The notes below the pieces were generated by a model. It saw only the letters and a list, made by a program, of their open reading frames with translations. It did no database searches and was not told where the DNA came from. From Wallemia ichthyophaga EXF-994 (Eukaryota > Fungi > Basidiomycota): a stretch of DNA of 32,000 bases. Location: assembly GCF_000400465.1 (NCBI RefSeq), contig NW_008806280.1, positions 480,001 through 512,000 of the forward strand, written 5' to 3'. Both the position numbers and the translations under genes were made by a program. The stretch's first letter is position 1. Each line of letters starts with the position of its first letter. Shown piece by piece: positions 860 to 21,100 of the stretch.

Positions 860-1489
860 ATGGCCATCTCCAAAATAAAGGCAGCGATCAGATCTCACCA
901 CAGGCGCTTAGATAAGGGCGTTGATGAGGAGACCAAGCAGTCCATCTCCAGGAAACTCGATGGCCTCAATTACGAGCTCAATAAGGTCAAAGAAGATGAG
1001 CTCTCAAGGAAAATGAGCTCGAGATATCACAAGATTAAATTTATCGAGAAGAGGAAATTGTTTAGATTGATTAATTCTATTAAAAATAATAAAATTAATA
1101 AGAATGACACTCACCCGGATTCGAAGCGAGCTCTATTCAAATACAGGCAGCAACTCAACTACATAATAAACTACCCAACGAATATCAAGTATATTTCTGT
1201 CCTTCACTCACCCTCCAACTCGGCAGACACAAAATCCAGACAAGAAAAACTTGATGACGTTGAGTCAAAGATGAATGCAGGCGATATCAGCAGTACTCCA
1301 GAGCTAATTGTGTTTAAGAGTCTTCAATCTGACAATGTCAACGAGGTAGAGGGGAGTAAGGGGAGTAAGCAGAAGCCCCAGACGCAGGAATCCCAGAAAT
1401 CCCATAAATCCCAAAAATCCCACCACCATCAGCCATCAGAAGATTCAGATGACCAAGCCAATCTCTCCGCTGACGATTTTTTCGAATAG
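860..1489 (+). CDS. EFG1: rRNA-processing protein Efg1 (209 aa, intronless)
   Basis: SKIKAAIRSHHRRL...KMSSRYHKIKFIEKRKLFR...QLNYIINYPTNIKYISV matches Efg1 family motifs (KxxRYHKxKFxERxK; LNYxxxYPxxxKYISL). Acidic tail ends DDFFE. Confidence 0.9.
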   Translation: MAISKIKAAIRSHHRRLDKGVDEETKQSISRKLDGLNYELNKVKEDELSRKMSSRYHKIKFIEKRKLFRLINSIKNNKINKNDTHPDSKRALFKYRQQLNYIINYPTNIKYISVLHSPSNSADTKSRQEKLDDVESKMNAGDISSTPELIVFKSLQSDNVNEVEGSKGSKQKPQTQESQKSHKSQKSHHHQPSEDSDDQANLSADDFFE

Positions 1490-1543: not shown

Positions 1544-2758
1544 TCACACCACATCCCCCTCGCTTTCGCTCTCGCTGTCAAAGTGCAGCTGCAGGCCTTG
1601 TGTGTTTCTCTTGGCGAACGTGTATCCATCGCCGCATGGCGGGTGGGGGATAGGCAGGAGGAGTACAGTCCAGTGTCTACGAGAGGCTGTCAGAGAAGGG
1701 GAGAAGAGCGCCACATACCCACCTGCGACCGCCACCAATGTTGAAAAAGAGCGACAAGTTCTTCGCCCACCCGAAGTCGTAGGGGTTGATAGCAGTGTAA
1801 GCAGGCTGAAGCTGGGTAGTGAGAGAATGTGTGAGTATGAGTGTGCACCATATCTCAAATAAGCAACTCACGCCATTTCTTCGATCCCGCCTCACAGCTT
1901 TTCTGTACGCTCTATGATCCTCGTACTCGACACTAGTGAGGCCTTGAAACACGAGCGAGAGCTGCCACGCAGCCATTACACCGACAACGCTTCCAATAAG
2001 TAGGGCGAGAAGCCAAGTCAGCACTGCAAAGAAGGGCGGCGAGTAGTAGCGCTGTGTCCATTCATCACTACCTCGATTAGGCAACACCTCATCGAACACT
2101 GCGCCATAGCCCATCACCCCCACTATCAGACACGCTGCAGAGAGGTATAACCTGTATGATTATGTGCGCGTGTGCGCGTGTTAGTTATCACCTATATACG
2201 CCATGTACACCACTCGACAAAGCAAAACCCACATAAAGAGCACGAAATAACGCTCATTGCCAAGCCCGACACACTGGTTGATCCACGGACAGTGGTGATC
2301 GTATTTGAGTATACAGCGGCTGCAGACGCGGCAATGGTGGGCGCGTTCCGGCTTCACGGCTGAGCATTTGGAGCATTTTGTGTGCGATCTGTGTGCGGTG
2401 TCTGCAGCCACTTCATCTTCACCCACGCTCACCAAGCCCGGTGACACAGTAACAGCCTTGTAGTAGTTGAAGAAGATCACAGCGGCATGCCAGGTGCAGT
2501 ACACGGCAGCCAGACGACGCGTGAGCGGAGTTGAGTGAGCGAGAGCGTGTGGAAAAATAACTTCAACTGCGTTTGCGGGATAGTGTGAGCGGTGTGATAC
2601 GCACACTTAGCACTGCACCCACAGAAAGAGAATGTACACGGTATGAGCAGTGCTACGGCGAAAGTGACAAATAGCACACCCGTTCTCCCCACAATCCTGT
2701 CCGATAGATCCTCGCAGTGCCGTAAAACTTTGTGGATCCGCCGCGCGTGTTTTTCCAT
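1544..2758 (-). CDS. DHHC palmitoyltransferase (about 323 aa, 5 exons: 2758-2623, 2566-2233, 2151-1872, 1811-1723, 1676-1544)
   Basis: Cys-rich domain [44 protein letters not shown], four hydrophobic segments, LTSVE (TTxE-like) and [11 protein letters not shown] motifs. Canonical GT-AG introns join the exons in frame. Confidence 0.92.
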
Positions 2759-2810
2759 CGAAATGGTGGTGATCGTCGGTTATCAACCGCCATTTCGGAT
2801 AATTTTGGAG

Positions 2811-3284
2811 ATGGTCTCAAACAGGGGAGATAGGAATACTTCCGATGTAATCCACAGACAGCCGCTGCATGACAAGAATGCGGGAAATAGGGGAGTTGGG
2901 AGTGAGGAGAGCGGGGAATGCGCTGATAAGACGCCCCCAACGCTCGCAACACGCCAGACGAAGAAGCCATCCGCTAAGAAAACACAGAAACATCACGCAT
3001 CACTCACCAAAGAGAATCTCAAACGGCACACACGATCGATGAGCACGAGTGGGAGTGCTTGGGGTTCGGGGAGTGTATACGGCAACAACGTAACCAAAGT
3101 AACAGCCGCAGCTACGCACTTGTCAGAAGTTTCGCCCGCGCCATCGCCACCGCACAAAACAAAGCGCAAGATGAGAGACAGGGACAGGTACACGGCCCAA
3201 CTTACCCCGCGCAAGCTCAAGCGTATACGTGAGTTTAAAGAGATCGACGAATGGCAGCTGAGTGAGGAATTGGTGTTGTTTTGA
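2811..3284 (+). CDS. Sororin-like (CDCA5/Sor1-type) protein, 157 aa
   Basis: Start chosen at ATG 2811, because the ORF-track start at 2643 overlaps the DHHC gene. Low-complexity basic protein with an RxxL D-box-like motif (RQPL, 2856-2867), a KEN box (3009-3017), S/T-P sites including TPRK, and C-terminal RIREFKEIDEWQLSEELVLF*, which is in register with the sororin C-terminal motif. Confidence 0.65.
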   Translation: MVSNRGDRNTSDVIHRQPLHDKNAGNRGVGSEESGECADKTPPTLATRQTKKPSAKKTQKHHASLTKENLKRHTRSMSTSGSAWGSGSVYGNNVTKVTAAATHLSEVSPAPSPPHKTKRKMRDRDRYTAQLTPRKLKRIREFKEIDEWQLSEELVLF

Positions 3285-3318
3285 GGAAAAGTTATAAATA
3301 TATGCAGTATCCAGAGCA

Positions 3319-3340
3319 TGTGTGTGTGTGTGTGTGTGTG
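3319..3340. repeat. (TG)11 microsatellite
   Basis: Direct reading; abuts the 34-bp array. Confidence 0.97.
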
Positions 3341-4122
3341 TCTATCTATACCTATTTCTGTGTCTGTGTCTGTGTCTATCTATACCTATTTCTGTGTCTG
3401 TGTCTGTGTCTATCTATACCTATTTCTGTGTCTGTGTCTGTGTCTATCTATACCTATTTCTGTGTCTGTGTCTGTGTCTATCTATACCTATTTCTGTGTC
3501 TGTGTCTGTGTCTATCTATACCTATTTCTGTGTCTGTGTCTGTGTCTATCTATACCTATTTCTGTGTCTGTGTCTGTGTCTATCTATACCTATTTCTGTG
3601 TCTGTGTCTGTGTCTATCTATACCTATTTCTGTGTCTGTGTCTGTGTCTATCTATACCTATTTCTGTGTCTGTGTCTGTGTCTATCTATACCTATTTCTG
3701 TGTCTGTGTCTGTGTCTATCTATACCTATTTCTGTGTCTGTGTCTGTGTCTATCTATACCTATTTCTGTGTCTGTGTCTGTGTCTATCTATACCTATTTC
3801 TGTGTCTGTGTCTGTGTCTATCTATACCTATTTCTGTGTCTGTGTCTGTGTCTATCTATACCTATTTCTGTGTCTGTGTCTGTGTCTATCTATACCTATT
3901 TCTGTGTCTGTGTCTGTGTCTATCTATACCTATTTCTGTGTCTGTGTCTGTGTCTATCTATACCTATTTCTGTGTCTGTGTCTGTGTCTATCTATACCTA
4001 TTTCTGTGTCTGTGTCTGTGTCTATCTATACCTATTTCTGTGTCTGTGTCTGTGTCTATCTATACCTATTTCTGTGTCTGTGTCTGTGTCTATCTATACC
4101 TATTTCTGTGTCTGTGTCTGTG
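3341..4122. repeat. Minisatellite: 23 tandem copies of TCTATCTATACCTATTTCTGTGTCTGTGTCTGTG (34 bp)
   Basis: Units start at 3341+34k (checked at 3375, 3409, 3511, 3681, 3851, 4021, 4089). No variant unit or spacer was seen. Confidence 0.97.
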
Positions 4123-4127
4123 CCTCT

Positions 4128-5714
4128 TTAGCCTCCTTCTTCCGCCGCCTTCCTCTCCTCTTCCTCCTTTACGAGCTGATTAACACTCTCCACTATACCT
4201 TGCTTACGCTGCTCGTTATTCGCATCCCACCACTTTCTCCCACCCTCATCTATCCAATTAGGGAGAGGAGCCTGAAAGCACCAATCGGGACTCGTGTAGC
4301 GTGTGGCATGAAGATAGATGAAAAGTTTCTCGCGCGGGGGGTCTGGAATGAGGGGGATGAAGCAAGTGGGGCAGTATCCGCCGAGGCCTTGCGTGACGCT
4401 GTTGAGGTTATGAGCGTCAGTGTTTGTATCATTGTGGCCATGTTGTTGTTGTTGTTGATCTTCCTTTATTTGATTCTGCTTCTGCTTCTCCTGCTCGTCG
4501 CTCCCAAAACCCAGCGCATCTCTCCACCTCGCCCAGCCGTCGCTTTCGTCTTTCTGCGCGCGTAGACGTCGTATCACCTCCTTGTACTCCTCGTGTAGCT
4601 CGACTGGGCTGTTGAACCCGATATCGTCGTCGCTGCGAATGAAATGTTTGGCGTTATCGCCGAGGTGTTTCTCGAGTATTTCTACGTCCTTGGAATGACA
4701 TGTGTTTAATGGCTGTTCTTTGCGCTGCTCCTGATTCTGCCCCTGTTTATGTTCCTGCTCCTGATCGTGCTCCCTGTCCAATTCCAACAACTCACCGAGC
4801 ACGCGCTCGGTGGTATACGTCGGCCATCCCCCTTTCCCTCTTTTCACGCCCCACACCTCGTAGCTCGAGTAGAGAGGATCGTTAGCGATCGGATAGCCTA
4901 GGTACTGAAGATGAACGCGAATCTGGTGAGTGCGACCAGTGAGAGGTTGGCAATAAACGATGCTAGTATCAGTGACAGAATCATACGACATACGTTCGAA
5001 CATTGTTTTGGCCTGCTTGCCGTGTTCGTGGCGAATAACGAGTCCCATCTGTCTATCGACGGTAATGATAGGCTCGTCGACAGTCTCGCGGTCTGGGAAT
5101 CGACCCAGGACGCGTGCAATGTACTCTTTCTTTATTACGCCGCGCATAAACGCTGCACCGAGTTGCTGACCTGCGCTCTTGCGCGTGCCTATCACCATCA
5201 CACCGCTAGTCAGCCTGTCGAGACGATTACAGCAGTAGAGGCTGTTCATTTTGTATTCGTCCTGGAGGATCTCCAGCAGCGTGTTCTTCCTGTACCGCCC
5301 AGCAGCGTGCACAGGCATAGAGCCAGGTTTGGACACAACGAGCCAGCCACGCTCTTTGTTTTCGTAGATTATAACAGGCAGCTCAGCTACAACTGGTGGT
5401 TCATGCGCATGCACTCGGTTCTGGATGAGGTCGCCATTGCGCACTACAGAATCGAGCGTTGCGGGCTGGCTGTTGATAGTAGCTATGCCCGTCTGGATGG
5501 CCCACTCGTAATAAGACTTGGACCGGTCGCGGAACTCCGTCGTACACACTTCCACTAACCTCCGCCCAAACCACCGTTGCTTGGCGTATGTCTGGTAGAC
5601 GTAGTAGTACGGCTGTACACTGCGTAGACCTTCCTTGTACACTATGCGGGGAGGATCCGCCGCGAAAATATCCTTTACATCCACTTTCTGCGTCTGTGGC
5701 ATCCTTCTTCTCAT
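4128..5714 (-). CDS. RluA-family pseudouridine synthase (Rib2/Pus9-like, probably tRNA Psi32), intronless
   Basis: GLRSVQPYYYVYQTYAKQRW, S4-like domain, KPGSMPVH, catalytic NRLDRLTSG, KEYIARV, PLTGRTHQIRVHLQYLGYPIANDPLY. Start is 5714 or 5702. No C-terminal deaminase domain. Confidence 0.92.
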   Translation of the reverse strand: MRRRMPQTQKVDVKDIFAADPPRIVYKEGLRSVQPYYYVYQTYAKQRWFGRRLVEVCTTEFRDRSKSYYEWAIQTGIATINSQPATLDSVVRNGDLIQNRVHAHEPPVVAELPVIIYENKERGWLVVSKPGSMPVHAAGRYRKNTLLEILQDEYKMNSLYCCNRLDRLTSGVMVIGTRKSAGQQLGAAFMRGVIKKEYIARVLGRFPDRETVDEPIITVDRQMGLVIRHEHGKQAKTMFERMSYDSVTDTSIVYCQPLTGRTHQIRVHLQYLGYPIANDPLYSSYEVWGVKRGKGGWPTYTTERVLGELLELDREHDQEQEHKQGQNQEQRKEQPLNTCHSKDVEILEKHLGDNAKHFIRSDDDIGFNSPVELHEEYKEVIRRLRAQKDESDGWARWRDALGFGSDEQEKQKQNQIKEDQQQQQHGHNDTNTDAHNLNSVTQGLGGYCPTCFIPLIPDPPREKLFIYLHATRYTSPDWCFQAPLPNWIDEGGRKWWDANNEQRKQGIVESVNQLVKEEEERKAAEEGG

Positions 5715-5750
5715 ATACCGATGGGCGTCGCAGAGCAAGAGAGGGCAGAC

Positions 5751-6441
5751 ATGGAAATGGAAGACAGCCCAAGCGACTCGGAGTTGCTGGAGGGATTGGA
5801 AGACGATGATTACAGGGAACAGCGTATACGTGAAATACAATCAGACATCACTCGCCGCCAGATAAACGCAGAGTTCGTTAGTCGAGGCGGATACAGGGAG
5901 TATACATCCGAGAAGGAAGTGATGGACGTTGGGCTGAAAGAGGCCAAGGCTGTGGTGCATTTCTTTCATCCACGGTTTAAGCGGTGCGAGATAATGGATA
6001 CCCACTTGGAGGTGAGCGTTGAGCTCATAAATCACTCAAATCACTCACCCACCACCCCAGCTCATTGCTCACCAACATCTAGGCACCAAGTTCCTCAAAG
6101 TACACGTCGAGAATGTGCCTTTCTTGGTAGAGAAGTTGAGAATAAAGGTGCTGCCATGTGTGATTACGTTTAGACAGGGCGTGGCAAGAGATAGGTGTGT
6201 GTGGCGTGTGCATGTACACCCTCTAACCCACCATACAGACTCGTGGGCTTCGAAGACCTCGGAAAATCTGATGAGTTTACGACGAAAATGCTTGAAAATC
6301 GTTTGTTTGAAATGGGTGAGTTGGGAGTTAGTCTATTTCTTTGCTGATAGGTGTACAACAGGTGCAATTACTAGCTTTGATCAAGATAAAGATGCTAATC
6401 ACGGTAATCACTCATCAGACACAAGTGACTACGATGATTAG
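5751..6441 (+). CDS. PLP1: Phosducin-like thioredoxin-domain protein (Plp1/TXNDC9-like, about 183 aa; exons 5751-6011, 6061-6194, 6239-6315, 6362-6441)
   Basis: YREQRIREI, VVHFFHPRFKRCEIMDTHLE|LIAHQHLGTKFLKVHVENVPFLVEKLRIKVLPCV, R|LVGFEDLG. Three GT-AG introns of 44-49 nt. Confidence 0.88.
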
Positions 6442-6450
6442 AAAATTAAC

Positions 6451-7077
6451 TCAGTATATCTCATCAAAGGGTCTTGTATCGTTGAAGCAGCTGCTGAAAA
6501 CTTGGTCAACAACCAATTCAGCCTGTTGAGTAGATTTGCAGTTAAAATTTGCAGCGACTGATAAAATTGCCCTTCTTCTAACGCATTCTTGGTGATGCTT
6601 GTTAAAGCCCATGTTTCCCCTCTTGAGCTCTTTAAAGAATCTACAATCACCGCTAAGATTCGCGGCTCTTATCTCGGAACACGCGTGATGACGGAGGTTG
6701 TTCCAGTCGACATTAAATCTGTGGTGATCCCATGAGTGAAGTAATTCATGCGCCAGAGTATTCTCCATGTGCTCATAACTGAAAATTCTATTGCTGCATA
6801 ACAAAATGCCAGTATCGGGGGAAAAACCACCACCACGCTTAGAAGAACAGGGAAAGCAGTGAATGGAATTTGAATTAAAGTCAACGCCAATTTTACGCAG
6901 ATGATCGACCAAGAATATAATAACTGGAGATGATTGCAACAGAGATCTCTTATACTTGTCGCATCTTTCAAAATCCTTAAGTTGAATCCAAGCAGCGTAA
7001 TCATCTTCAGACAATCCCAAACCAGAAAATAATTTAAAATTGTTTATCCATTTTTTATGGAAATTGGTTTCACTCAT
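6451..7077 (-). CDS. ATP23: Mitochondrial inner-membrane metalloprotease Atp23
   Basis: GGGFSPDTGILLCSN, HELLH (HExxH), VDWNNLRHHACSEIRAANLSGDC, QECVRRRAILSV, CFNDTRPFDEIY*. Start taken at MSETNF (7077). Confidence 0.95.
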   Translation of the reverse strand: MSETNFHKKWINNFKLFSGLGLSEDDYAAWIQLKDFERCDKYKRSLLQSSPVIIFLVDHLRKIGVDFNSNSIHCFPCSSKRGGGFSPDTGILLCSNRIFSYEHMENTLAHELLHSWDHHRFNVDWNNLRHHACSEIRAANLSGDCRFFKELKRGNMGFNKHHQECVRRRAILSVAANFNCKSTQQAELVVDQVFSSCFNDTRPFDEIY

Positions 7078-7143
7078 TGAAATTGAAATCAACGCACAGA
7101 CACGGTTATATCTCTTTCTTGGTTGGCAACGGCGAAGAGGGAG

Positions 7144-10100
7144 ATGACAGGGAATTCCTTGAATAATAATTTAAATAATTCTAATCTAATGAATGGCCTA
7201 TTCGACGCTCCCAGGAAGCTAAAAGGTCTTTCAATATCTCAAGTTGTCCCAGAAGATGCAGATGACGCAGGAGAATACGCACCGCAATGGCTTAGGAACG
7301 TTAAGGGCACCAGGCTACACCCAGAAAAGCTATCTTTGGTGGCAAATGTACTTGGATACAATCACAACCACTCACCATCACCAGTTACATTCAATTCTGG
7401 TTACTTACTCACTGTTATTCCTCCCAAATCGCTTAAATCCAAGTCTAATAACAGCAAACAGTTCAGTAGAGGCATTCTTATACCATTACAACCCTCTTTA
7501 CCCGCAATGAGAGCTGCTATTGCCAGAGAATTCAATCTACCTTCTTCGGGTGGTTTGGTTGTCTATTTAGTGGAGAATATGTCTCAGGACTCTGAAGACC
7601 CTGATAACTACATCGATTACCCAGGACCTCTTATAAACGACGAGTCCTGGAATCTTCTCTGGAAATCTCACCTTCGTTCTCCCTTTTTCTCGGAAAGAAT
7701 GCCCGATAAAATACCAAACGATCACCCTAGAGCGACACCCTCACTCAAAATACCTTCCACTCATCAATCCATTGCAGGCAAAATTGAATTTGATTTCGAC
7801 ACGGATTCAAAAGCCGGTAACTGGTATAGGTCTTGGCATTACCCTAATCTTCAGATTCCACTAGCTGACGGTAAGCGAAAGTTTAAGCTGCGCTCGGATA
7901 GTAAAAGCGTCCGAGGTACACATAACACACATGACACTCAAGGTACACGTGAAACACGTGACACCCAGAAAATAACGCAAGAAATCTTCCTTGACAATAA
8001 GGACACAGCACAAGAAATCTCATTTAACACCCAAGACAGCTCTCAAGTTCCTACTCCTGCTGCTCCCTCTAACCCAACCCTCGATACCAATACCAACGAC
8101 AAGAACGAATCACCACGATCTACTTCTTCACTACCTTACCGTACATTCGAGTTGGAAACACTGCACTCTTTACTGAATCCACACTCCGGAGACAGTTCCC
8201 CAACTCAGTCCATCTCTCAACAAACCAATTACGACCAAAATCCAGATGAAAACCAAGACAAAAACCAGAACAGGGGATCTGTTCACGTTATGCAGGACAC
8301 ACTCGACGAGCTCGAAAAAGCACTTACTGAGCTCAGTCCAAAACCTATCAATCTCCAGGAGGATTTTGGGCAGCGCCGTGATGCTGTACAGAAAGCCGCT
8401 CGTACTCTATCAAAGATTGGCAACAGGGACGGTTTCCATATGCCACGCAAAGATGATGGTACTTTGAAATCGTTTGAGGAAATTTCAGACGAGAATGAGA
8501 TCAATGAGAAGGTGAAAGAGAAAGAGGAAGAGAATTGCAGTGGGTGAAGAATTTGATGACTTCTAAGCTTACTAATCAGAAATATAGCTACGCAGCAAAC
8601 ACAGCACGGCACAATCAACGCACCAAAAAACACCACAGTCAATACCGTCGGATCACGCCAAGGCTATCGTAAGGATGACGAGCCTGTTGATCTCCCAAAA
8701 TCACCATCACGGTCGATGGAGTCGAGGAGTAACAGTCTGTCTAACTCGGATGACAGTAACCAAAACGACACTCTCACTGAAACTCCAGCAACAGAGACTG
8801 ATATGTCTAGATACACTCCACCACCCAAACCATCATTTAAACCACATCTCAGTATCGAAACTAATCCTCACCCTCAAGCTCACCCTCAACATCCCCTATT
8901 CAGCATAACTCCTTCCTCACCCTGGAGTACTGGACCAAAAACAGCACCACCAAATTCAACCAACATATCACCGCCACGGTCTGGATTCAATCTGCCAAAA
9001 ACTCCAACAAGCGCTGATGAGAATCGATCAACCAAGACCTCACTTACCTTTGGCGGTCGTCGCAAGGAGTCCATTCAGATGGACAAAGCAGACAAGGTAG
9101 AGAAGATGGAAAAAGTGGACAGAAAGAACAGCACAGAGTCCAAGAGATCCATCAGCTCAAAGGAGGCATTAGGATTGGATGGGTTAGGTATAAAGGGATT
9201 TAAATTCTGGTCATCGGCCAAAGGTAGCGCAGGCAACAATAGCAATAGCAGTACAAGCGCCAACCAAGCACCACCGGCGCCAAAACAGAGAGAGAGAGCA
9301 CCCAGCATAACAATGCCTATGGGAGTAGTCAAGACAGCTTCTGGGGGTCCAGGGAGGATAACGCAGACTTACTCACACCAGCCCGTCCCCGCCAATACGT
9401 CTATGTCTATGAGATCTATATCACCCACACTATCAAGTCAAGACCACGGCACCGACGCTACGACGTCGATGATTGACCATTTCCCAGACAGCCGATACCC
9501 CAAAGACATAGAACTGAGTGATGGGAAGCGTGAGTTTGAGTTGACTAGAGTAATTGCATTATGATGGCTAACAAGTAATTGAAAAGCAGATATGGTCCCG
9601 CTAAGACCACCGCCAGTGCGTCAAAATTACGTCGATGGTGCACAAACGGCGAGGACGCATTCGTGGAGCAGCTCAACGAAAGCTCGCGGATTTCGTGCCC
9701 GTAAGCAGTCGTTGGATAACGGTGTAGGGCCACCTACACTGCCAAACCAGCACTCCGTCGTGCACTCATACTCTTACTCTCACTCCACTCCCCTCCCGTC
9801 AACAGCGACTTTTGCACCGCCGGAACCTATACCGGAGAACCTGGAGGAAATTAAGAGAGATTCAGAGGCAGAAGCAGCCGAGGCTGCAGAAGAGGAAAAG
9901 ATAAATGAAATACTGGCCAAAGAACGCGAAAAGGATTTCGAGGCTAAGGTGGAGGCGTTCGAACAGGACCAGCTGGCTTCTCAAGCCAGAGCTAGAGCGC
10001 TCACTTATCAGGAAGAGACGAGAAAAGCTATCAAAAAAGAAGAAGAGCAGGAGCCCGAGTTAGTTTCCAAGAAAAAGGGCATGCCTGGATCGAGGTTTAG

Positions 10101-10167
10101 CCTCAGCCCTCCTCCATCCGCTTCGCGCAAATTGCCCAATGTGCCTGTCTTCTCTAGGAGGCGGTGA
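7144..10167 (+). CDS. Hypothetical protein, about 971 aa (exons 7144-8539, 8588-9529, 9590-10167), with an ordered N-terminal block and a long disordered remainder
   Basis: Three ORF-track segments join in frame via GTGGGT...CTAAT...TAG (48 nt) and GTGAGT...CAG (60 nt) introns. The block GILIPLQPSLPAMRAAIAREFNLPSSGGLVVYL...INDESWNLLW...IAGKIEFDFD...WYRSW resembles an uncharacterised basidiomycete family (from memory, not searched). Confidence 0.75.
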
Positions 10168-10365
10168 TATGGGTTCTTTTATTATATTTTAGTCGTCACA
10201 TTAATTCAGCAGCGCAGCGTTATAATAAGAGTTTGACTTGTTTCCTTTGCTTTTTTTTTTTTCTTCTATCATTCAACGGAAATATACTATAAGGATATTG
10301 TATACATGTATTTATATCTCGAATTTATAAGAATCATCATTGCCAACTTTGCGTCCGCATGTGTG

Positions 10366-10374
10366 ATCACGTGA
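10366..10374. promoter_or_regulatory. ATCACGTGA E-box (Cbf1/CDEI-type bHLH consensus) about 140 nt upstream of the GPI-protein ATG
   Basis: Palindromic TCACGTGA in an AT-rich intergenic region. Single site, function unproven. Confidence 0.3.
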
Positions 10375-10510
10375 ATTGCATTAGCTTCAACAAAAAATTT
10401 TGACTGGAATGCAAAGATTCGCACTAAAGTAAAAAATACTAAAATTTAAATACGATATTCAAAGATGTACATTTCTTGCCTCCCAACAACACTTCACAAA
10501 GAGAAACAAC

Positions 10511-11326
10511 ATGAAGTCAGCAATTTTCCTTGCAGCTCTCCCAGCCGTCATCTTGGCTAACGGCATCTGGATCAAGAACCCTGTCGAGGGTGGAGACGCA
10601 TACTGGCGCATAAAGCACACCAACACCATCAAGTGGGGCGCTGACGGACACGACAACCCAGAAGCCTTCAGTGTTTACCTCAAGAACGACAATCCTAATG
10701 TAGACGGGAACAATCTTGGTATTGCAAACAATGTCAAGACTACTGATGGCTCAACCAAGATTGAAAAGCTTCCAGACTATGTCAAACCAAGGTAGGTGTT
10801 TTGGTATTTTGGGTGTTTCACCTTGTCTCAAACTCATGCTCACACTCACATCTGCAGCGATGGCTGGAGAATCGAATTCGTGCAGGTAGACGACATCAAC
10901 AATGTGTACACATCCTCATCTGACTTCAACATTCGTGAGAAGGACGCACCAAGACCACCAGCACAGGAGGGAAGCGACCACGATGAAATCGACGAGGACA
11001 ACATTGAGGAGTCCAACAATGATGACGACAAGTCTAACAAAGACGACGACAAGTCCAAGACCGAAGATGAAGACGCAAGCAGGACATCCAAGTCATACGT
11101 AAGCTCAGGCACAGCTAGCGTGATGAATATGCCATCTTCCTCAAGCTCCAAGTCATCCTCTTCTACTTCACACTCAATCCCTAACCCTACTCACAATGCG
11201 CCATCAAGCTCCGCAGATCCCGATAGCCAGGCCGCTAACGATGAGGACTCTTCTGCTACAACGGCTGCCGTTTCTTCACTCTTACTCGCTACTCTCTCGC
11301 TCGCTATCGCTACGACTGTTTTTTAA
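10511..11326 (+). CDS. Secreted GPI-anchored Ser/Thr-rich cell-surface protein (Kre9/Knh1-N-like domain), about 249 aa; exons 10511-10791, 10858-11326
   Basis: Signal peptide MKSAIFLAALPAVILA; IWIKNP...TIKW...FSVYL...GWRIEFV...VYTSSSDFNI; acidic and Ser-rich linker; hydrophobic C-terminal GPI signal DSSATTAAVSSLLLATLSLAIATTVF*. Confidence 0.85.
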
Positions 11327-11429
11327 TCAACGTTTACTAATGAATTGTTCTCTTTATATAAATGAATTAATACAATACTTGAAAATTTTTATCAGCAAGA
11401 TGGAAAATTATAACAAGAAAAGACCCCTG

Positions 11430-14400
11430 TCACTTGAATCCAAAGAATGATTTGGTGGTCGACCTCAAGCTCGTGTCGGGTGTGAATGAGCGAGATGGTG
11501 TTGCAGATCTGCTTCCGAGACTAGAAAATATGCTACCTCTGAAGCTTTTCTTGTCGTAAGTGGATTGATTTAAACCTTTAGTAGATGACTGGACACTGTT
11601 TGGACCGTTCTTGTTTTTGGTTGGTGTCGGCAAGCTGTCTTGCCTAGATGCTATACTAGCCATGAGACCAGGCTGTGCCATGCCCTTGCCAGTTGAAGGA
11701 GCTGGAGGTGGTTTGCGGCTTGATGTGTGCAACGCGTGCGCAGATGGCATAGGTGATGCCTTTATTGGCGAAAGCGACTGGCGCGGTTGGTGTTGGTTTG
11801 GTGACGTAACAAGGTTCACTACGTTTGACGTTGTACGTTGTGGTAGTTGAGATGGCGGCGGCGATTGGCGCTCTTCCAAAGCCTGCGCCCATAGTGGCTT
11901 AGGTGGTATGCGTCCTATAATACCCCTCAACTCCTTCACCCACACCTCTTTATCCTCATCTGTGTCACTGAAGAAGTGTAGCTTCTCTTCACCACTCTGG
12001 TCTTGCAGTACGAGCATAAATGATCTCTCGACGCTAGCATCTCCCTCATCCACCCATCCATTCTCGACCGCCTCAGCTGACGCGTTGTTGCAATCTAAGA
12101 CTGCTTTCGCCGTTGCTAAGTCTATAGTGGCGATAGCACGCTTTGTCACTTCGTTGAACACTATAATTCGTCCACCGACTAAGCTATACATCCGACGCCT
12201 CCAAGACTGAAGTCTTTGTCAGTACGATGTTAATACTTTATAACCAAAACTCACAGTGACACCTCCACCGAGCTGAGTGAGAACTGATTGGCATATTTTC
12301 TTCTTATGCCACTGCATTTCTTTCATAGTCTTGACAGTGTGCTCCAAAGACGAAGGCAAATCCTTCTGAACAACACCCGGCAGAGTCGGTATTCCAAGCA
12401 CATGTAAAACCAGTTTACCGACAATGCATTTGGTCACGCTGCCGTCATTCTTGGTGAATTTACCTTCCAGTGGAAGAATGAGCTCGACCATTCTGCCTTG
12501 ACACCTAGGTGCGACTTCATTGTAGATGACTCTCGTACTACCGAAAGTGCCATCTTTCTGCAAAAAGTTAAGCATGGGCTCGGTAGGTTCGACGGCATCA
12601 AGCTCTTCAAATTTAGATTGCTCAATTTGCCTTTCGAGTTGCTCCTGCTGTTCTTGCGCTTTCCTCTTCTCCTTCTTAGGTGAGCTGAATATTGACCTGA
12701 AACCAGATCTGCTCTTCGACGGCGTCGGCGGCTGTGTTGGAGTGGCCATGGCAGGCCTGAAGCGAGGCTGTGGGCGTGGTGGTTGAAGGTGTTCGTCCAT
12801 GCGGCACTTGAATGATAGCGTGAAAAAGAGATTCTTGTTCAATATCAAATCAAACTCTTGTCCCAGTGGGGCCTCTTTCCTCAGAGTAGTGTATGGAGTT
12901 GCGACGTGATTGATACCGTTGTCTAGTGTACAGCAGAAAAATGTTTGTTTGCCAACAGGTATCGGGAGTTCAACATCACGCAATCCAGCAACCTTGACAA
13001 ACACCTTGCCTGTAGCTTCACTGAGAGGCTCCTTATTGCGTACCTCTTTCAGGTGTCGAGAGTACTCATTCATATCAGACGGACGCCTAATTACCTTCCA
13101 TGCTTTACCAGTGTCAATATCACCTGCCTTTGCGTGGTGACTAATCTTGGGCTTTTGCACTGTCTCTTCTTGCGATGAAGCTCTGATAACCTCGTTATGT
13201 TCGAACATTTTGTATTTTCTGTCCGAGTCCTTGAATATCTCTCTCATTTCTCTGTCAAGATCATCACCAAAGTCTCCCTCATTGAGTGCTCCCGGTGTCG
13301 GCAACCCACTAGATGGTCTAAATATCGCTTTCTTCCTTGGTGACTCGACTGCATCTGCCGACACGCTTCGCCGCCTCGATGGACGCTCTCCTCTATCTGC
13401 GCGAGATTTCTTCCGTGATAGCAGAATGGCATTTTCACGATCTTTCAAACTGGCGTTACCACGCATCGATTGCTGTCTCTGTGGGGGAATTGCATCAAGA
13501 TTTGGAGAGACAAAAGGTGCGAAAGATTCCAAGTCTCTTGTTGCTTCCTCATCTTGAGTTGGTGGTTGCAGCTCAGCCTTGAGTTGGGGTTGGGGTTGAG
13601 CTTGAATATGAGGCTGAGGTTGAGGTGGTGCATGTTCCGTCTCTTGGTCTGCCTCTGATGGTGCTGCTGTTTCAGGAGCGCTTGGAAATGCCACGGCCTC
13701 CTCAAACGACTGTCTGTTATGCTTCATTGGGGATGGTGCAACTGCAGCAATAGCAGCCTTGATTGGAGATGGAGGTTGAGAATCGTGTGCATCTGGTGCT
13801 CGAATTTCGGGTGTCTGATGTATTTGTTAGATTGTCATGTAAGCTTGTGCGTCACTTACCAAAACATCTTGAACGTTCTCCTTTTCATGCTCACGTTCAC
13901 GCTCACGCTGAGCCAGCAATGCAGCGTTTGCCTCCTCAGTTTCTCTCTTTTTTCTCATTTTCTCTTGAACAGCCTCCCTGAGGTTGCGGCGTCTATTGAT
14001 ACTTCCAGCTGCATTTGGTGAGATTGGATTGCCCGCGGCGTCGAAGCGAGGTGAAAGGAGTGGTGAGATCAGGCTATTGATGTTCGGTGTGTCGTCTGAA
14101 TGCTCTGATTGTTGAGGCAACGGGTGAGCTCGCTCATGTTCATGTTCGATTTGAGGTACTTTTGGCATCTTTGCAACTTCTTCAGATGGAGGAGAGAGTG
14201 CCCAAAGAGGTGATGAGTGTGGTAACTCTGGCAAGACTGAACGATCCTTTAAGTCATCATCACTTGACTGATCTGGCTCCATTTCAGCAACTTCAGGTTC
14301 TTGCAGCAGCTCAGGTTTATGCTCCTCCGGTTGCTCAATTTCAGGTTCTTGCCGTGGCTGATGCTCATAATCTTGCAATTGTTCTGGTTCAAATTGTTGT

Positions 14401-16349
14401 ATTGTCTTTGGCTTAGACTCTTGTAGCTGTTCAACTTGGAACTCTTGCGCTGGCTCTGGTTTAGACTGACGTGGATGTTTAATTTCAGATTCTAACGACC
14501 GCTCGATTTCGAACTCTTGCGACTGTTCAACTTCGTACTCTTGAGATTGCTCTAAGTCGTACTCCTGCGAGTGCTCTAGCTCAGACTGTTGTAGCTGCTC
14601 TGATTCAGACTCAGGCAGCGCATCCTCTTCCTCTTTAATATGGCTAATCATTGGCTCATCCTTAACCATTTCATGAGAAGCCAATTCGGACAAGTTAGGA
14701 GATGGCATAGACTGTGGTCTACCGATACCCAGCTGACGCATTTTGTTAGGCGTGGTATCCTTGGTAGGTGTTGATTGACGCTTGTTCGTCGAAGTTCTTA
14801 ATGGACTAGTTTTAGAGTACCTGAGCTCCTCAATAGACTTTCTACGATCACTATCTCTTAGCAGCTCATCTTTCAAAATAGAGTCAACCAGGTCTTCCAT
14901 CTGGGTGCGTTCCTGATCGTGGCTCTCGTCTGCGTCTTCATAAGGATGCTCGCCTTGGTCGAACGAGTGGTCGATCACTGACGAGTTCTCATCGTAGTGC
15001 CCGCTATCATCATTTTCATTCTCTGCAAAGTGCCCACTTTCATCTTCTTCGTCGTAGAGACTAGGGGACTCTTCAGGATAGGCGGCCTGATAGCTTGTAT
15101 CAACTTCCAACTCCTCATTTCCAAACTCATGAGGATATTCGTGGGAGTATTCCTCCAAGATACCTTCGTGGGCATAGTCATGAGCGAGTTCGGGTGTATT
15201 TTCGGCGCTATCTTGAGTGGGAGTATGACTCTGTCTGTTTCTACCTAGCGTATGCTGCTCGACTAGTGAGCTAGACGGTGGAGGCATTGGAGGGGTGTCT
15301 TCCCAGCTAGCGCCGACTAGAGCGTCCCGAGCATTCTGCGCGTCATACAGATCAATATCATGCTCCAGATCATGCTCAACTTCCTCATACTCCTCTCCGT
15401 CATCGTATTCGTAGCTACCGTCGAATTCATCCAACCTATCATCATACTCTGGGCTGAATACACCCGTCGCAATGGAATCAGGCTCAGGCTCACGCTCGAA
15501 CTCGTGTATATCAGGGTTTTCTTCGAAAGTGACTGTCTTGCGTCTGGAGAGGGTGCTTCCAGCTGAAGGTGGTCTTTCCTGCTCATATTGATCAAATTGA
15601 TCATATTTATCATATTGCTTTACTTGCTCCTCCTCCTCTACTTTCTTAGAAACAGACAGAGGCTTTGTTTGCGCAACGGTTGGAGTTGGTGGTGAAAAAG
15701 CAGAAGATGGGTGTGCCGGGTGATCAGCTTCCGAGCCAGCGGAGCTGTGGTGCCTCCATGGTGACTGAGTGACGCGTTGAGCGGAAGGAAGGAGGTTGTA
15801 ACCCTTCGATTTCCTAGGCTTAGGCGATGAAGTGCGTTCTTGGACCGTATGGTGGCTTTGAATGTGTCTGTGAGGCGATCTCGATGGATGGAGTCCCAAT
15901 CCCATCGCCGGAGATTCTTCTGGCACCGGTGATGATGTGTAGTCGATCTGTGGAGAAGGGAAATCGTTGGTGTGTTGCTTAAACGGGGAATTCTGGACGA
16001 GGGAGTTGTTTCTGACATGTGAAAAACTCGATGAAGTTCTCCGCTGTGTGGATTGTACGCCTGCACCTGCAGCTACAGCAGCAGCGACAGCAGCGGTTGG
16101 AGACTTAGGAGATGACTTTGGAGACTGCTGAGTTGGTTTGAATAGCCTGTTCGGACTAAACTCCGCGTCTGGTGACATTACTGAGTGCGCCTTGAGCGCT
16201 ATTTTGGATGATGGCTGGTTGCGATTCGACCATCCGCGTGAAGCTGCAGATATGATAGCGTCTCTATCGCGCTCCTTGCGCGTAGGCGTTCCAGGAGACC
16301 GTAGCTGTGGTGAGTTGGATGTTTGCAATGGCTGCGTGGGTGTGGGCAT
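11430..16349 (-). CDS. BUD4: Bud4/Int1/Mid2-like anillin-related protein, about 1608 aa (exons 16349-13860, 13814-12255, 12206-11430)
   Basis: Long disordered N-terminus; anillin-homology (DUF1709-like) region GKVFVKV...CCTLDNGINHVATP...QEFDL; PH domain LTQLGGGVT|SWRRRMYSLVGGRIIVFNEVTK...FFSDTDEDKEVWVKEL. Introns of 45 and 48 nt. Confidence 0.85.
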
Positions 16350-18164: not shown

Positions 18165-21100
18165 ATGAAATTAGAAACTGGTACGAGAGTGTAAGCGTGG
18201 CGATGTTTTTAATGAGCTATTTAATTTACACCTATTAGCTGGCTCAGGGACTCGGTACACGGATGGATTGGTGCCGCTGTCACTGGAACATCCGCAGGCA
18301 GCAAATCAGATGAATTGGTTCATTTACGGACTTCCAACGGCGTAAGCGGACTCCGCGGAGATTTCATCCCTTAACAAACCACCCAGCCAACTCAAATCGC
18401 TGTCAACAACACAGACGATCATCCACCTCTGCGGAGTTTTACACAGGAGCAGAATTTCGTGGATGATCTCACTCAGCTTCATCTACTAAACGAGCCAAAT
18501 TGTGTGTTTATCGAAACAACCGCGTTTCTTGAACCCCGCTGACAGCTATCAGTGCTTATTACACTAAGAAGCCGTTTCGAGCGCAGAATCATTTATACGT
18601 ACTCAGGATTAGTTCTCGTAGCCCTCAATCCATATGCAGATACCTCAATTTACTCAAACGATCATATACTCCACTACGCCTCCGATAATCCTCCGAGCCA
18701 GCCTCATATCTACTCTGTTGCTCGATCAGCTTACGACGGTATCTGTAACGCAAAGCGCAATCAGACTATCATTGTCAGCGGTGAATCTGGTGCTGGTAAG
18801 ACTGTCTCAGCGAGGCACATCATGCGCTATTTCGCTGTTGCAGGTAAAACCAAGGATAAAAACACCATCACTTCAACAGAAGAGCGCATCTTAGCCACAA
18901 ACCCTGTCATGGAAGCATTTGGTAACGCCAAAACACTCAGGAATAGCAACAGTAGTCGTTTCGGTCGTTACTTGCAGATATACTTTGATGACAAGAGCAG
19001 TATAGTTGGTGCACATATACGCATTTTCTTGCTGGAGAGGTCGAGGCTGGTTTATCAACCGCACAACGAACGTAACACTCACATTTTTTACCAGCTCTGC
19101 GCAGGCCTCAAGACAGACTTTAGTCTCAAGAGGGAGTTGAAGCTCGGTTCGGCTGACGAATACAACTACCTCAATCAAGGCCAGTGTTCTAGACTGCCTG
19201 GCGTTGATGATGCTTTCAACTTTGACATTACTAGGCGTGCCATGACCTCATTAGGTATTGATAACAGTACACAAAAACAAATATTCAGACTACTCGCCGC
19301 ATTGTTGCATTTGGGTAACATCGAAATCAAACAAACTTCTTCTACCAGACAAGATGCATCCGTCTCAATCACCGACTCAAGCCTACTGCATGCCGCAGAG
19401 TTGTTGGGTATATCAGCAATCGCATTTCAAAAAGGATTGATGCATAAAACTATCGGTGTTGGAAGAATAAGAGCTGAATCTGAGAAGATTGTCACGTCGC
19501 TCAATAAAGATCAGGCCACCACTGCGAGAGATTCACTGGGTAGACATATTTATACCAGATTATTCGACTGGCTTGTTATTAAGCTCAATTCTACCCTTCT
19601 TTCAAAAGAGTCTGGTGCCTCGGATAGTGCTCGACAGTTTGTCGGTGTGTTGGACATATACGGCTTTGAGCACTTCCATAAGAACTCCTTTGAGCAGTTC
19701 TGCATCAACTACGCAAACGAAAAGCTGCAGCAGGAGGTGTGTATTTTGCTCATTCAGAGTTGTGCTCCATGAGGTAACACTGACACCTTCACAGTTCTAC
19801 AACCACACCTTTAAACTATCGCAGGAAGAGTATGATCGCGAGGGATTGAAGGTCGCATACATCAATTACCCAGACAACCAACCCTGCATTGAAATGATAG
19901 AATCTAGAGTTGGTTTGCTTGCCCTTCTCGACGAGCAGTGTCGATTGCCTGCAGGCACTGACGCAGGACTGCGCACCAAGATGGATGAAATGCTGCGCTC
20001 GCCTTACAAGAAGGCTTTGTTTTCAGGTAGCAAGAGCAACTCGCTAGGTGCAGGTGCATTCACGGTCGCGCACTACGCCCAAGATGTGACTTACGATGTA
20101 GACGGATTTCTAGAAAAGAATAGAGATTCTGTACCGGAGGAGCACAAAAATCTGCTCAATGAAGCTCAAAATTCATTTGTTAAGGAAGTTTGTACAGCCG
20201 ATCTCACACCGACGACACCGCCAAGCATTGTCTCTACACCTACGCAACCATTGAAAACACCTTTACAAGCAGTTCACTCGCCCCCGTCAAGGTCTAGTGT
20301 AGATGAACTGTCTAGCGCTTTCAGCAAAGGTCATATTCGCTCACCTTCAACAATCCCGCCTAGTTGGCCACCCGCATCGCCTGGCTCGCCGTCTCTCAGC
20401 GCGCCAACTCTGCGTAAACAGCCAACGTTAGGAGGCACATTTAAAATGTCATTGAATAATCTAATGACAACGATAAACGACACTGACACACACTACATAC
20501 GTTGTATCAAACCAGCCAATCAAGAAAACGCATCATGGTCATTCGACAACCAAAAAGTATTATCGCAATTAAGAGCATCTGGCGTGCTCGAAACTATCAG
20601 AATAAGCAGAGCAGGATACCCGTCCAAGATGACATTCGACAAATTTGTTGAAAAGTGGGTGATTTGTTTGAAGTTTATAAGACTGACAATTTTAGATACG
20701 ACATACTGATATCACAACGCGAAACGAAACTTAAATCGAACAACGACAGAAAAGCATCTTTCAAGATACTGGAGGGGACAATCACCAACAAGACACTATA
20801 TGCCATTGGGAGAACTAAGGTGTTTATGCGAGTTGGTGTGTTGGCTCATCTCGACAAATTGCGGTCAATATTGCTAGCAAGGATTGTGGCTATACAAGCC
20901 AGCGCACGCTCGACAATCTCCACCAAGCGCTACATCCGTCACCAAGCCAGCATAGCGGTGGAAGCTAAGCTATATGTAAGCCTGCAAGCCGTATCGCGGA
21001 CCAAGCTAGTCATGCTGCGTGTCGGCGAAGCGCTTACCCAGCGACTGGAAAACGTTCGCATCAGACACGCCGAAAAGGAGCGTTGGGAAAGGAAGGCACT

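Follow-up and report, generated by a model that had tools for sequence, protein, structure and literature searches.

A putative, very compact sororin-like protein in the basidiomycete genus Wallemia

Introduction

In a 32,000-nucleotide stretch of contig NW_008806280.1 of the halophilic basidiomycete Wallemia ichthyophaga EXF-994 (hereafter the window, the numbering of which is used throughout), a small gene encodes a protein that would be, at slightly better than even odds (about 55%), a very compact sororin-like protector of cohesin. This assignment is drawn from sequence comparisons. The gene itself is real and protein-coding, has no introns and keeps its syntenic position across the genus Wallemia. 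Sororin holds sister chromatids together by antagonising Wapl. Its occurrence outside animals came to light only in 2022-2024, and a short, degenerate box at the C-terminus is all that allows it to be detected. Statistical homology of the candidate to any known sororin is not established and, by the reciprocity standard of a survey of the evolution of SMC complexes in which sororins were called (bioRxiv 10.1101/2024.01.07.573240), it would currently count as a 'putative' sororin.

The original prediction, made from the letters of the window alone, was that of a compact sororin. What stands of it is the invariance of the C-terminal motif and of the KEN box, the overall architecture and a subthreshold match of one ortholog to the Pfam family Sororin_C. 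What did not follow is a significant result in any homology test. The coordinates of the gene, of its sequence features and of its neighbours are collected in Table 1.

Table 1. Coordinates, in the window, of the candidate gene, its sequence features and the neighbouring genes
Feature	Residues	Position	Strand	Remarks and evidence
Candidate coding sequence, 157 residues + stop, intronless	1-157	2811..3284	+	ATG 2811, TGA 3282-3284
RQPL, D-box-like, probably not functional	16-19	2856..2867	+	Unconserved
SLTKENLKRH, KEN box at 67-69, putative APC/C-Cdh1 degron	64-73	3000..3029	+	Conserved in 5 orthologs
SPAPSP, pair of minimal S-P sites of the CDK/MAPK type, immediately preceding the basic cluster	S108, S112	3132..3149	+	
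K/R-rich cluster HKTKRKMRDRDR, likely nuclear localisation signal	115-126	3153..3188	+	Sequence and published sororin architecture
TPRK, full CDK consensus, start of predicted C-terminal helix	132-135	3204..3215	+	Invariant 5/5
Predicted amphipathic alpha-helix PRKLKRIREFKEID	133-146	3207..3248	+	AlphaFold2 monomer, block pLDDT 88 and 78
Sororin-box-like C-terminus FKEIDEWQLSEELVLF	142-157	3234..3281	+	Invariance, Pfam register, Sor1/human spacing
Upstream DNA motif ATCGTCGGTTATCAAC, candidate promoter element		2772..2787	+	In the 52-bp gap between the DHHC gene and the candidate
Efg1 rRNA-processing gene		860-1489	+	
DHHC palmitoyltransferase gene, at least 3 exons		1677-2758	-	ORF pieces 2477-2758, 2181-2606, 1677-2123
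RluA-type pseudouridine synthase gene		4128-5840	-	
APC/C, anaphase-promoting complex/cyclosome; CDK, cyclin-dependent kinase; MAPK, mitogen-activated protein kinase; ORF, open reading frame; pLDDT, predicted local distance difference test.

A short gene conserved across Wallemia

The product is a basic, disordered protein, as had been deduced from the ORF. Its computed isoelectric point is 10.18, with 30 K+R against 17 D+E, and it is hydrophilic (grand average of hydropathicity -1.12). An AlphaFold2 monomer model, built on a five-sequence alignment, is mostly disordered (predicted template modelling score, pTM, 0.18; mean pLDDT 59). The sole helices of this model span residues 67-79 and 133-146, the tail 147-157 being non-helical. 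The C-terminus reads ...REFKEIDEWQLSEELVLF before the stop codon, with ...PRKLKRIREFKEIDEWQLSEELVLF as the final residues. In a database search, the candidate was found to be 98% identical to 'hypothetical protein E3P77_03102 [Wallemia ichthyophaga]' (P0001). This bears out the basidiomycete origin proposed beforehand, as well as the expectation that such a protein would carry a 'hypothetical' label.

Alternative starts exist upstream. The longest ORF begins at 2643, and the NCBI model of E3P77_03102 begins at 2763, 16 codons before ATG 2811. The 16 extra N-terminal residues of the NCBI model (MVVIVGYQPPFRIILE) are present in no ortholog, and three orthologs start with MV[ST]xR[GN]. Because the ortholog N-termini read in this way, ATG 2811 is preferred to the NCBI start, in agreement with the original prediction. 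From this comparison, the start of the NCBI model was probably mis-called.

Four further orthologs were recovered by database searches: P0002 (167 residues), P0003, P0005 (98 residues) and P0006 (103 residues). P0003 is W. hederae E3P99_01404, the ORF of which reads through as 173 residues, and the three others come from unannotated assemblies (Logan/ENA). Together with the window protein, these four make up the five orthologs referred to below. The deposited W. hederae product (L003 6001-6522) has 163 residues, 10 fewer than the 173-codon ORF. The 30-nucleotide 'intron' annotated in this gene is probably an annotation artefact, because the ORF continues through it in frame.

In every case, the ortholog directly precedes the pseudouridine synthase gene, towards which it is transcribed convergently, and it stands beside the DHHC palmitoyltransferase gene where the contig extends far enough. 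The syntenic ORFs are uninterrupted at the four other Wallemia loci. Overall identity of the orthologs to the window protein is 35-57%, and 43% in the five-sequence alignment; protein-level HMMER comparisons between orthologs give E-values from 1e-9 to 1e-68. Across the five species, the ORF is open at about 64-74% nucleotide identity, and differences in length are in-frame.

Positions invariant across the five orthologs (n=25) are confined to two blocks; elsewhere, the sequences diverge to 35-44% identity. The first one is S64-L-T-K-E-N-L70..H73. The second one is T132-P-R-K..R138-I..F142..I145-D146.W148.L150.E152-E-L-V-L156, followed by F or Y and the stop codon. Over the last 31 codons, 17 synonymous and 4 non-synonymous codon differences separate the window from L001, the locus of a Wallemia relative (Logan SRR25399871). 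In the KEN block, more distant pairs show 3-6 synonymous against 1-2 non-synonymous changes. This synonymous excess in both blocks points to purifying selection at the protein level, and thus to a real gene; the view that the ORF is not a gene is therefore rejected.

The C-terminal box and its likeness to known sororins

Sororins are short, mostly unstructured proteins sharing a C-terminal box, which follows a K/R cluster and a linker of 10-20 residues (PMC11148194). In the candidate, the K/R cluster HKTKRKMRDRDR is followed by a 15-residue linker and then by F142. The sororin pattern F-x2-[A/V/I]-[D/E]-x-[F/Y/W]-x-L is found at the extreme C-terminus, the end of the box lying 9 residues before the stop codon. 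The more extended pattern F-x3-[DE]-x-[FW]-x-L-x2-E, which had prompted the idea of a sororin, is indeed matched by FKEIDEWQLSEELVLF. Conservation of this motif in orthologs had been set as a test of the idea, and the motif turned out to be invariant in the five Wallemia proteins: within the box, F142, I145, D146, W148, L150, E152, E153, L154, V155 and L156 are common to all.

In Schizosaccharomyces pombe Sor1 (313 residues), residues 298-311 are the most conserved ones, and F299, V302, D303 and Y305 are each essential (PMC11148194). Compared through these published residue positions, the spacing of F299/V302/D303/Y305 is identical to that of F142/I145/D146/W148 in the candidate, and the distance from the phenylalanine of the box to the C-terminus is 14 residues in Sor1 and 15 residues in the candidate. 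Sor1 (SPAC9E9.05, with related proteins in Pezizomycotina, Yarrowia and Lipomyces) is likewise a disordered fungal protein in which the last ~14 residues alone are conserved, with a K/R-rich stretch before them. Both proteins were found only at twilight-zone scores of hidden Markov models (HMMs). However, Sor1 has no KEN box, is not degraded by APC/C in extracts and carries a putative FGF motif, whereas the Wallemia proteins have 98-174 residues, an invariant KEN block and no FGF.

In animals, the consensus of the box is [W/F/Y]xxx(hydrophobic)NxxFxE[A/hydrophobic][E/D]x[F/Y]ELx(hydrophobic)E (PMC10656103). A 30-residue C-terminal region of human sororin binds the RAD21-SMC3 exit gate directly (PMC12976308). 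Gate contacts predicted with AlphaFold 3 involve W233, F241, A243, E245, F247 and E252, with a helix extending from K227 to E245, and both binding and cohesion are abolished in the double mutants W233A/E252K and F241A/F247A (PMC12976308). In the candidate, the positions of the gate residues F241, E245, F247 and E252 are taken by the invariant F142, D146, W148 and E153, and that of L249 by L150. In this register, which is that of the original prediction, the helix ends at the same aligned residue, E245 in the human protein and D146 in the AlphaFold2 model of the candidate.

Vertebrate sororin (CDCA5) resembles the candidate outside the box as well. Its KEN box also has a leucine two residues before (LEKEN, to be compared with LTKEN), and it has S/T-P sites for CDK, among them an SPP element immediately ahead of the K/R cluster; this cluster is in turn followed by the C-terminal helix and tail. 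On the other hand, the vertebrate protein possesses YSR and FGF motifs for Pds5 binding and the Sororin_middle region, which the candidate lacks.

A further comparison is offered by plants. The N-terminus of Arabidopsis Haspin contains a 'well-conserved Sororin domain', YFRDIDAFE (PMC11148194). Within these nine published residues, the plant domain (AtSORORIN At3g56250; Haspin) shares with the Wallemia proteins the core F-[RKQ]-[DE]-I-D-x-[FW]-[EQ], as seen by comparing FKEIDEWQ, FEEIDKWE and FQDIDSWE (the last one in P0005) with the plant FRDIDAFE. Unlike the candidate, the plant proteins have no KEN box, and Haspin carries the motif joined to a kinase and not at the C-terminus.

The KEN block, CDK sites and other short motifs

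The KEN box is a feature of metazoan sororins and is absent from the members of the family in S. pombe, Sordaria and Arabidopsis. It is present in the candidate, as first noted, at residues 67-69 and is invariant in the five orthologs. The same holds for the full CDK consensus at residue 132, one of four S/T-P sites; the three others are at residues 41, 108 and 112, further S/T-P sites having been announced in the original prediction. The SPP element is retained in the three long orthologs only, and the K/R cluster is weaker (KSKK) in the orthologs of 98-103 residues. In a motif scan of the window protein, neither FGF nor YSR Pds5-binding motifs were found, in line with the earlier remark that a vertebrate-type FGF is missing.

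Three other short motifs of the window protein were considered and rejected since they are unconserved in the orthologs. RQPL, which had been pointed out as D-box-like, does occur at residue 16. However, an RxxL is retained only in P0002 (RAVL) and is absent from W. hederae and from the short orthologs, so that the D-box role is discarded. The two others are a B56-type LxxIxE (LKRIRE) and a Cy-type RxL (RKL).

A weakly conserved aromatic-glycine patch, with the pattern [SA]-x-[YFH]-[GK]-[NS], was also observed at residues 88-92 (nucleotides 3072-3086), after the KEN block and ahead of the basic cluster. It reads SVYGN, SAYGN, SAFKS, IAHGN and MAHGS in the five orthologs. It is faintly similar to the [K/R]-[S/T]-Y-[S/G]-[K/R] motifs of interaction with Pds5, but without their basic residues.

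Homology searches and chance expectation

The Pfam model of the C-terminal box, PF25220 Sororin_C, has 24 positions and a gathering score of 27.4 bits. As a control, human CDCA5 (in a sequence 98-100% identical to database sororins) matches both PF09666 Sororin_middle and PF25220 Sororin_C, the latter over residues 229-252, with 38-43 bits. Among the five orthologs, one, P0003 of W. hederae, matches Sororin_C. With the full-length protein, Sororin_C is the first of five weak matches (E=0.22, 11.9 bits). With the last 33 residues, the match reaches E=0.021 and 15.2 bits, FEEIDKWELCEE being placed on model positions 13-24 of 24. When the last 33 residues of each of the five orthologs are scanned, Sororin_C is the sole Pfam family reported, and the register of the match is the one that had been predicted.

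Scaled to a proteome of 5,000 proteins, the P0003 match would correspond to an E-value of roughly 0.05-0.1. Sororins were first nominated with E-values of 1 in S. pombe, 0.089 in Pyrenophora, 0.04 in Arabidopsis and 0.03 in Yarrowia (PMC11148194). The scaled value is comparable with these twilight values, at which the known non-animal sororins were first picked.

The specificity of the motif was estimated with a chance model based on the amino-acid composition of the genes of the window and a proteome of 5,000 proteins. In this model, the 12-residue pattern F-x3-[DE]-x-[FW]-x-L-x2-E would turn up in about 0.1 proteins per proteome if it has to fall within the last 25 residues, and in about 3 if it may fall anywhere. 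For the bare core of Sor1, F..[VI]D.[YFW], the model predicts about 1.5 occurrences in the C-terminal tails of a proteome. In a set of 614 stop-to-stop ORFs (minimum length 50 residues) taken from the window and five related loci, the 12-residue pattern is unique to the candidate and its orthologs. By itself, the motif is specific to a moderate degree at best. Therefore, the case leans on the coincidence of several features: the motif lies at the extreme C-terminus, after a basic cluster, in a small and disordered protein that also has an invariant KEN box and, where the helix begins, an invariant CDK site. To these is added the invariance of exactly those residues on which the function of Sor1 and of human sororin depends.

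Evidence against the sororin assignment and alternative explanations

A number of results weigh against a sororin. The search of the C-terminus with the Pfam sororin models, which had been recommended as a check, failed for the window protein itself: no Sororin family matched at E<=10, whether the full-length sequence, the last 33 or the last 23 residues were used, and the scan returned only noise (DUF5427 and Peptidase_S32). The P0003 match remains 12 bits under the gathering score. Moreover, it is not independent evidence because it measures again the very motif from which the idea arose. Profile-profile comparison with hhalign gave a probability of 9% against human sororin, pairing only SPAPSPPHKTKRKM with ISPPPEKQKRKKKKM in the basic/SPP region, and of 0.7% against 20 mammalian sororins, pairing only EIDEW with ELDEW(229-233), in a different register. 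A local HMM of the mammalian box scored ~0 bits on the Wallemia family; this profile is too narrow for a fair test, because the homology search behind it returned mammals only. As for the box itself, the first half of the animal version (ELDEW233AAAMN238) has no counterpart in the candidate, and four residues (LVLF) extend beyond the position of E252, the C-terminal residue of the human protein.

Searches for distant relatives point in the same direction. With the family profile, HMMER recovered from 1.84 billion representatives the Wallemia orthologs and one low-complexity protein of 1,677 residues. A word-index search of 5.8 billion sequences with a four-sequence profile added one more Wallemia ortholog and a spurious match, SLTKENLERH. 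Nothing was found by scanning the metagenome contigs of the Joint Genome Institute (JGI) with the family profile. The absence of relatives outside Wallemia in these searches means that no chain of intermediates leads to the known sororins. The survey relies on a reciprocal profile link to known orthologs from human, fission yeast or Arabidopsis (bioRxiv 10.1101/2024.01.07.573240). Such a link was looked for with human and mammalian sororins, and the Wallemia profile found only Wallemia proteins. A search of the PDB with the family profile gave only RNase A noise, and the human control shows that the copy used contains no sororin chain.

Considering these results, the protein might instead be a cell-cycle nuclear protein restricted to Wallemia and directed at another partner, its likeness to the sororin box being due to chance or convergence. 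Candidate partners would be H2A-H2B (through a DEF/Y-type anchor), SUMO (through the acidic stretch and the LVL core) or an Atg8/LIR-type pocket (LIR, LC3-interacting region). This explanation is unlikely, though it is the most serious of the rivals. It agrees with a family confined to one genus in every search, with profile tests against sororins that are all non-significant and with a pattern short enough to recur by chance at the rates given above. Acidic and aromatic motifs can also converge, and those of sororins have been described as 'not always unique' (bioRxiv 10.1101/2024.01.07.573240). The KEN block adds to this side. It is conserved over 7 residues, beyond K-E-N, and its helix in the AlphaFold2 model (residues 67-79) has a pLDDT of ~78; it may thus be a binding helix instead of, or besides, a degron. 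However, no alternative family was matched in the Pfam and PDB searches, and the B56 and Cy motifs are unconserved. Several independent features, including the essential residues of Sor1 and of the human protein, coincide with those of sororin. On inspection, the C-terminus fits none of the consensus sequences of the Shugoshin C-terminal motif, the PIP box (PCNA-interacting protein box), ABBA, RVxF or LIR, and the corresponding Pfam matches are also missing.

The small size, disorder and basic character of the protein, its conserved KEN box and the RxxL found in 2/5 orthologs would also suit a Wallemia securin or another pseudosubstrate or inhibitor of the APC/C (Acm1- or Mes1-like), the C-terminus of which would bind separase or Cdh1; securins, too, are detectable only via short motifs. 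We consider this quite improbable. The D-box is unconserved, no ABBA motif is present and no match to Pfam Securin was obtained at E<=10. The motif [DE]-[IV]-E-x-x-P is the pseudosubstrate-type motif of securin-separase structures, and it is missing from the candidate. The stretch after the aromatic residue is only about 9 residues long, and only ~30 C-terminal residues are conserved; the shortest ortholog, with 98 residues, leaves too little room for a long separase-binding segment. Besides, securin was called separately in three other basidiomycetes (bioRxiv 10.1101/2024.01.07.573240). Finally, that a short low-complexity ORF, starting 52 bp from a divergent DHHC gene, annotated as hypothetical only and having short orthologs solely in unannotated Logan/ENA assemblies, might be a non-functional product of chance in a bidirectional promoter or a 3' region is hardly credible in view of the frame kept open in five species with in-frame length differences, the synonymous excess in both blocks and the strength of the HMMER matches between orthologs.

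A possible mode of action

If the candidate is a sororin, the following model may be envisaged. The C-terminal helix and tail (residues 133-157) would dock on the interface between the neck of Smc3 and the N-terminal domain of Scc1 (Rad21), at the DNA-exit gate of cohesin. There, F142, D146, W148 and E153 would take the roles of human F241, E245, F247 and E252, and of Sor1 F299, D303 and Y305. The gate would thereby be locked, after replication, against opening driven by Wapl-Pds5. The basic cluster would serve nuclear import and possibly provide affinity for DNA or cohesin. Binding in mitosis would be tuned by CDK, which would phosphorylate the SP sites and T132, the latter capping the helix at its N-terminal end. 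As in animals, the KEN box would be recognised by APC/C-Cdh1 and lead to destruction of the protein in late mitosis and G1.

Since the protein has no FGF/YSR module, gate locking would be its main activity, and competition with Wapl for Pds5 would not be expected. The sequences of the orthologs of 98-103 residues suggest that the KEN block and the box represent the functional minimum.

The locus and its neighbours

The first ATG of the DHHC gene is at 2758 on the minus strand, head-to-head with the candidate and 52 bp from its ATG. Because of this short distance, the two genes would have in common an extremely short bidirectional promoter, or their transcripts would overlap. A TCGTCG(G/T)T..TATC core is kept 5' of the candidate ATG in all orthologous loci. 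From this conservation, ATCGTCGGTTATCAAC, which lies within the stretch that the NCBI model takes as its 16 extra codons (2763-2810), is probably an element of the bidirectional promoter. The cell-cycle promoter elements MCB (MluI cell-cycle box) and SCB (Swi4/6 cell-cycle box), looked for upstream of the candidate, are not conserved across the orthologous loci.

On the other side of the candidate, the convergent gap between its stop codon and that of the pseudouridine synthase gene is occupied by a minisatellite (3325-4122). It consists of 23.5 copies, at 99% identity, of a 34-bp unit (TGTGTCTGTGTCTGTGTCTATCTATACCTATTTC), with a (GT)n run before it. The minisatellite would be an expansion specific to W. 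ichthyophaga, because the gap is only ~20-45 bp long in the four orthologous Wallemia loci. It produces long spurious ORFs (3281-4183, 3318-4565 and 3322-4131).

In L001, a gene for a phosphatidylinositol-specific phospholipase C (PI-PLC; 3202-4440) lies between Efg1 and the DHHC gene and is absent from this place in the window; the two loci are otherwise collinear, with 64-74% nucleotide identity. Elsewhere in the window, a Peptidase_M76 (Atp23-like) gene is found at 6451-7092 (minus strand) and a myosin motor gene at 18552-20709 (plus strand). The latter is split over at least two frames, which points to an intron or a frameshift near 19489-19772. Several long ORFs of the window (474, 282, 253, 502 and 840 residues; 7123-16349) have no Pfam match at E<=0.001.

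Implications

In the survey already mentioned, Ustilago maydis, Agaricus bisporus and Cryptococcus neoformans are each recorded with WAPL=1, Eco1=1, Securin=1 and Sororin=0 (bioRxiv 10.1101/2024.01.07.573240); the order of the columns was checked on the S. pombe row (Scc3=2, Shugoshin=2, Sororin=1). Its authors stress that the short motifs by which they found sororin and securin 'are not always unique', and their reciprocity criterion excluded about 20 putative sororins (bioRxiv 10.1101/2024.01.07.573240). Within the literature library searched, no paper links sororin with Basidiomycota. As no sororin was called in the basidiomycetes surveyed, a basidiomycete sororin would fill a recognised gap. 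That the candidate is the first recognisable one and, with 98-103 residues in some Wallemia, the smallest natural sororin is a tentative claim, to which we give slightly less than an even chance.

If the assignment is wrong, the Wallemia proteins would serve as a caution on how easily short acidic and aromatic motifs imitate the sororin box. If it is right, they would offer a starting point for tracing the sororins still missing from basidiomycetes, and show that a sororin of fungi can carry a KEN box like that of metazoans. They would also constitute a natural 'minimal sororin', made essentially of a KEN degron, one CDK site and a gate-locking box of 25 residues, with no FGF/YSR, in which gate locking is separated from competition for Pds5. 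This idea agrees with the 2026 finding that the tethered 30-residue C-terminal region of human sororin suffices. Gate locking alone would then be the ancestral and sufficient activity of sororin. Finally, control of sororin by the KEN box and the APC/C would be older than the split between animals and fungi, and would have been lost in ascomycetes and plants.

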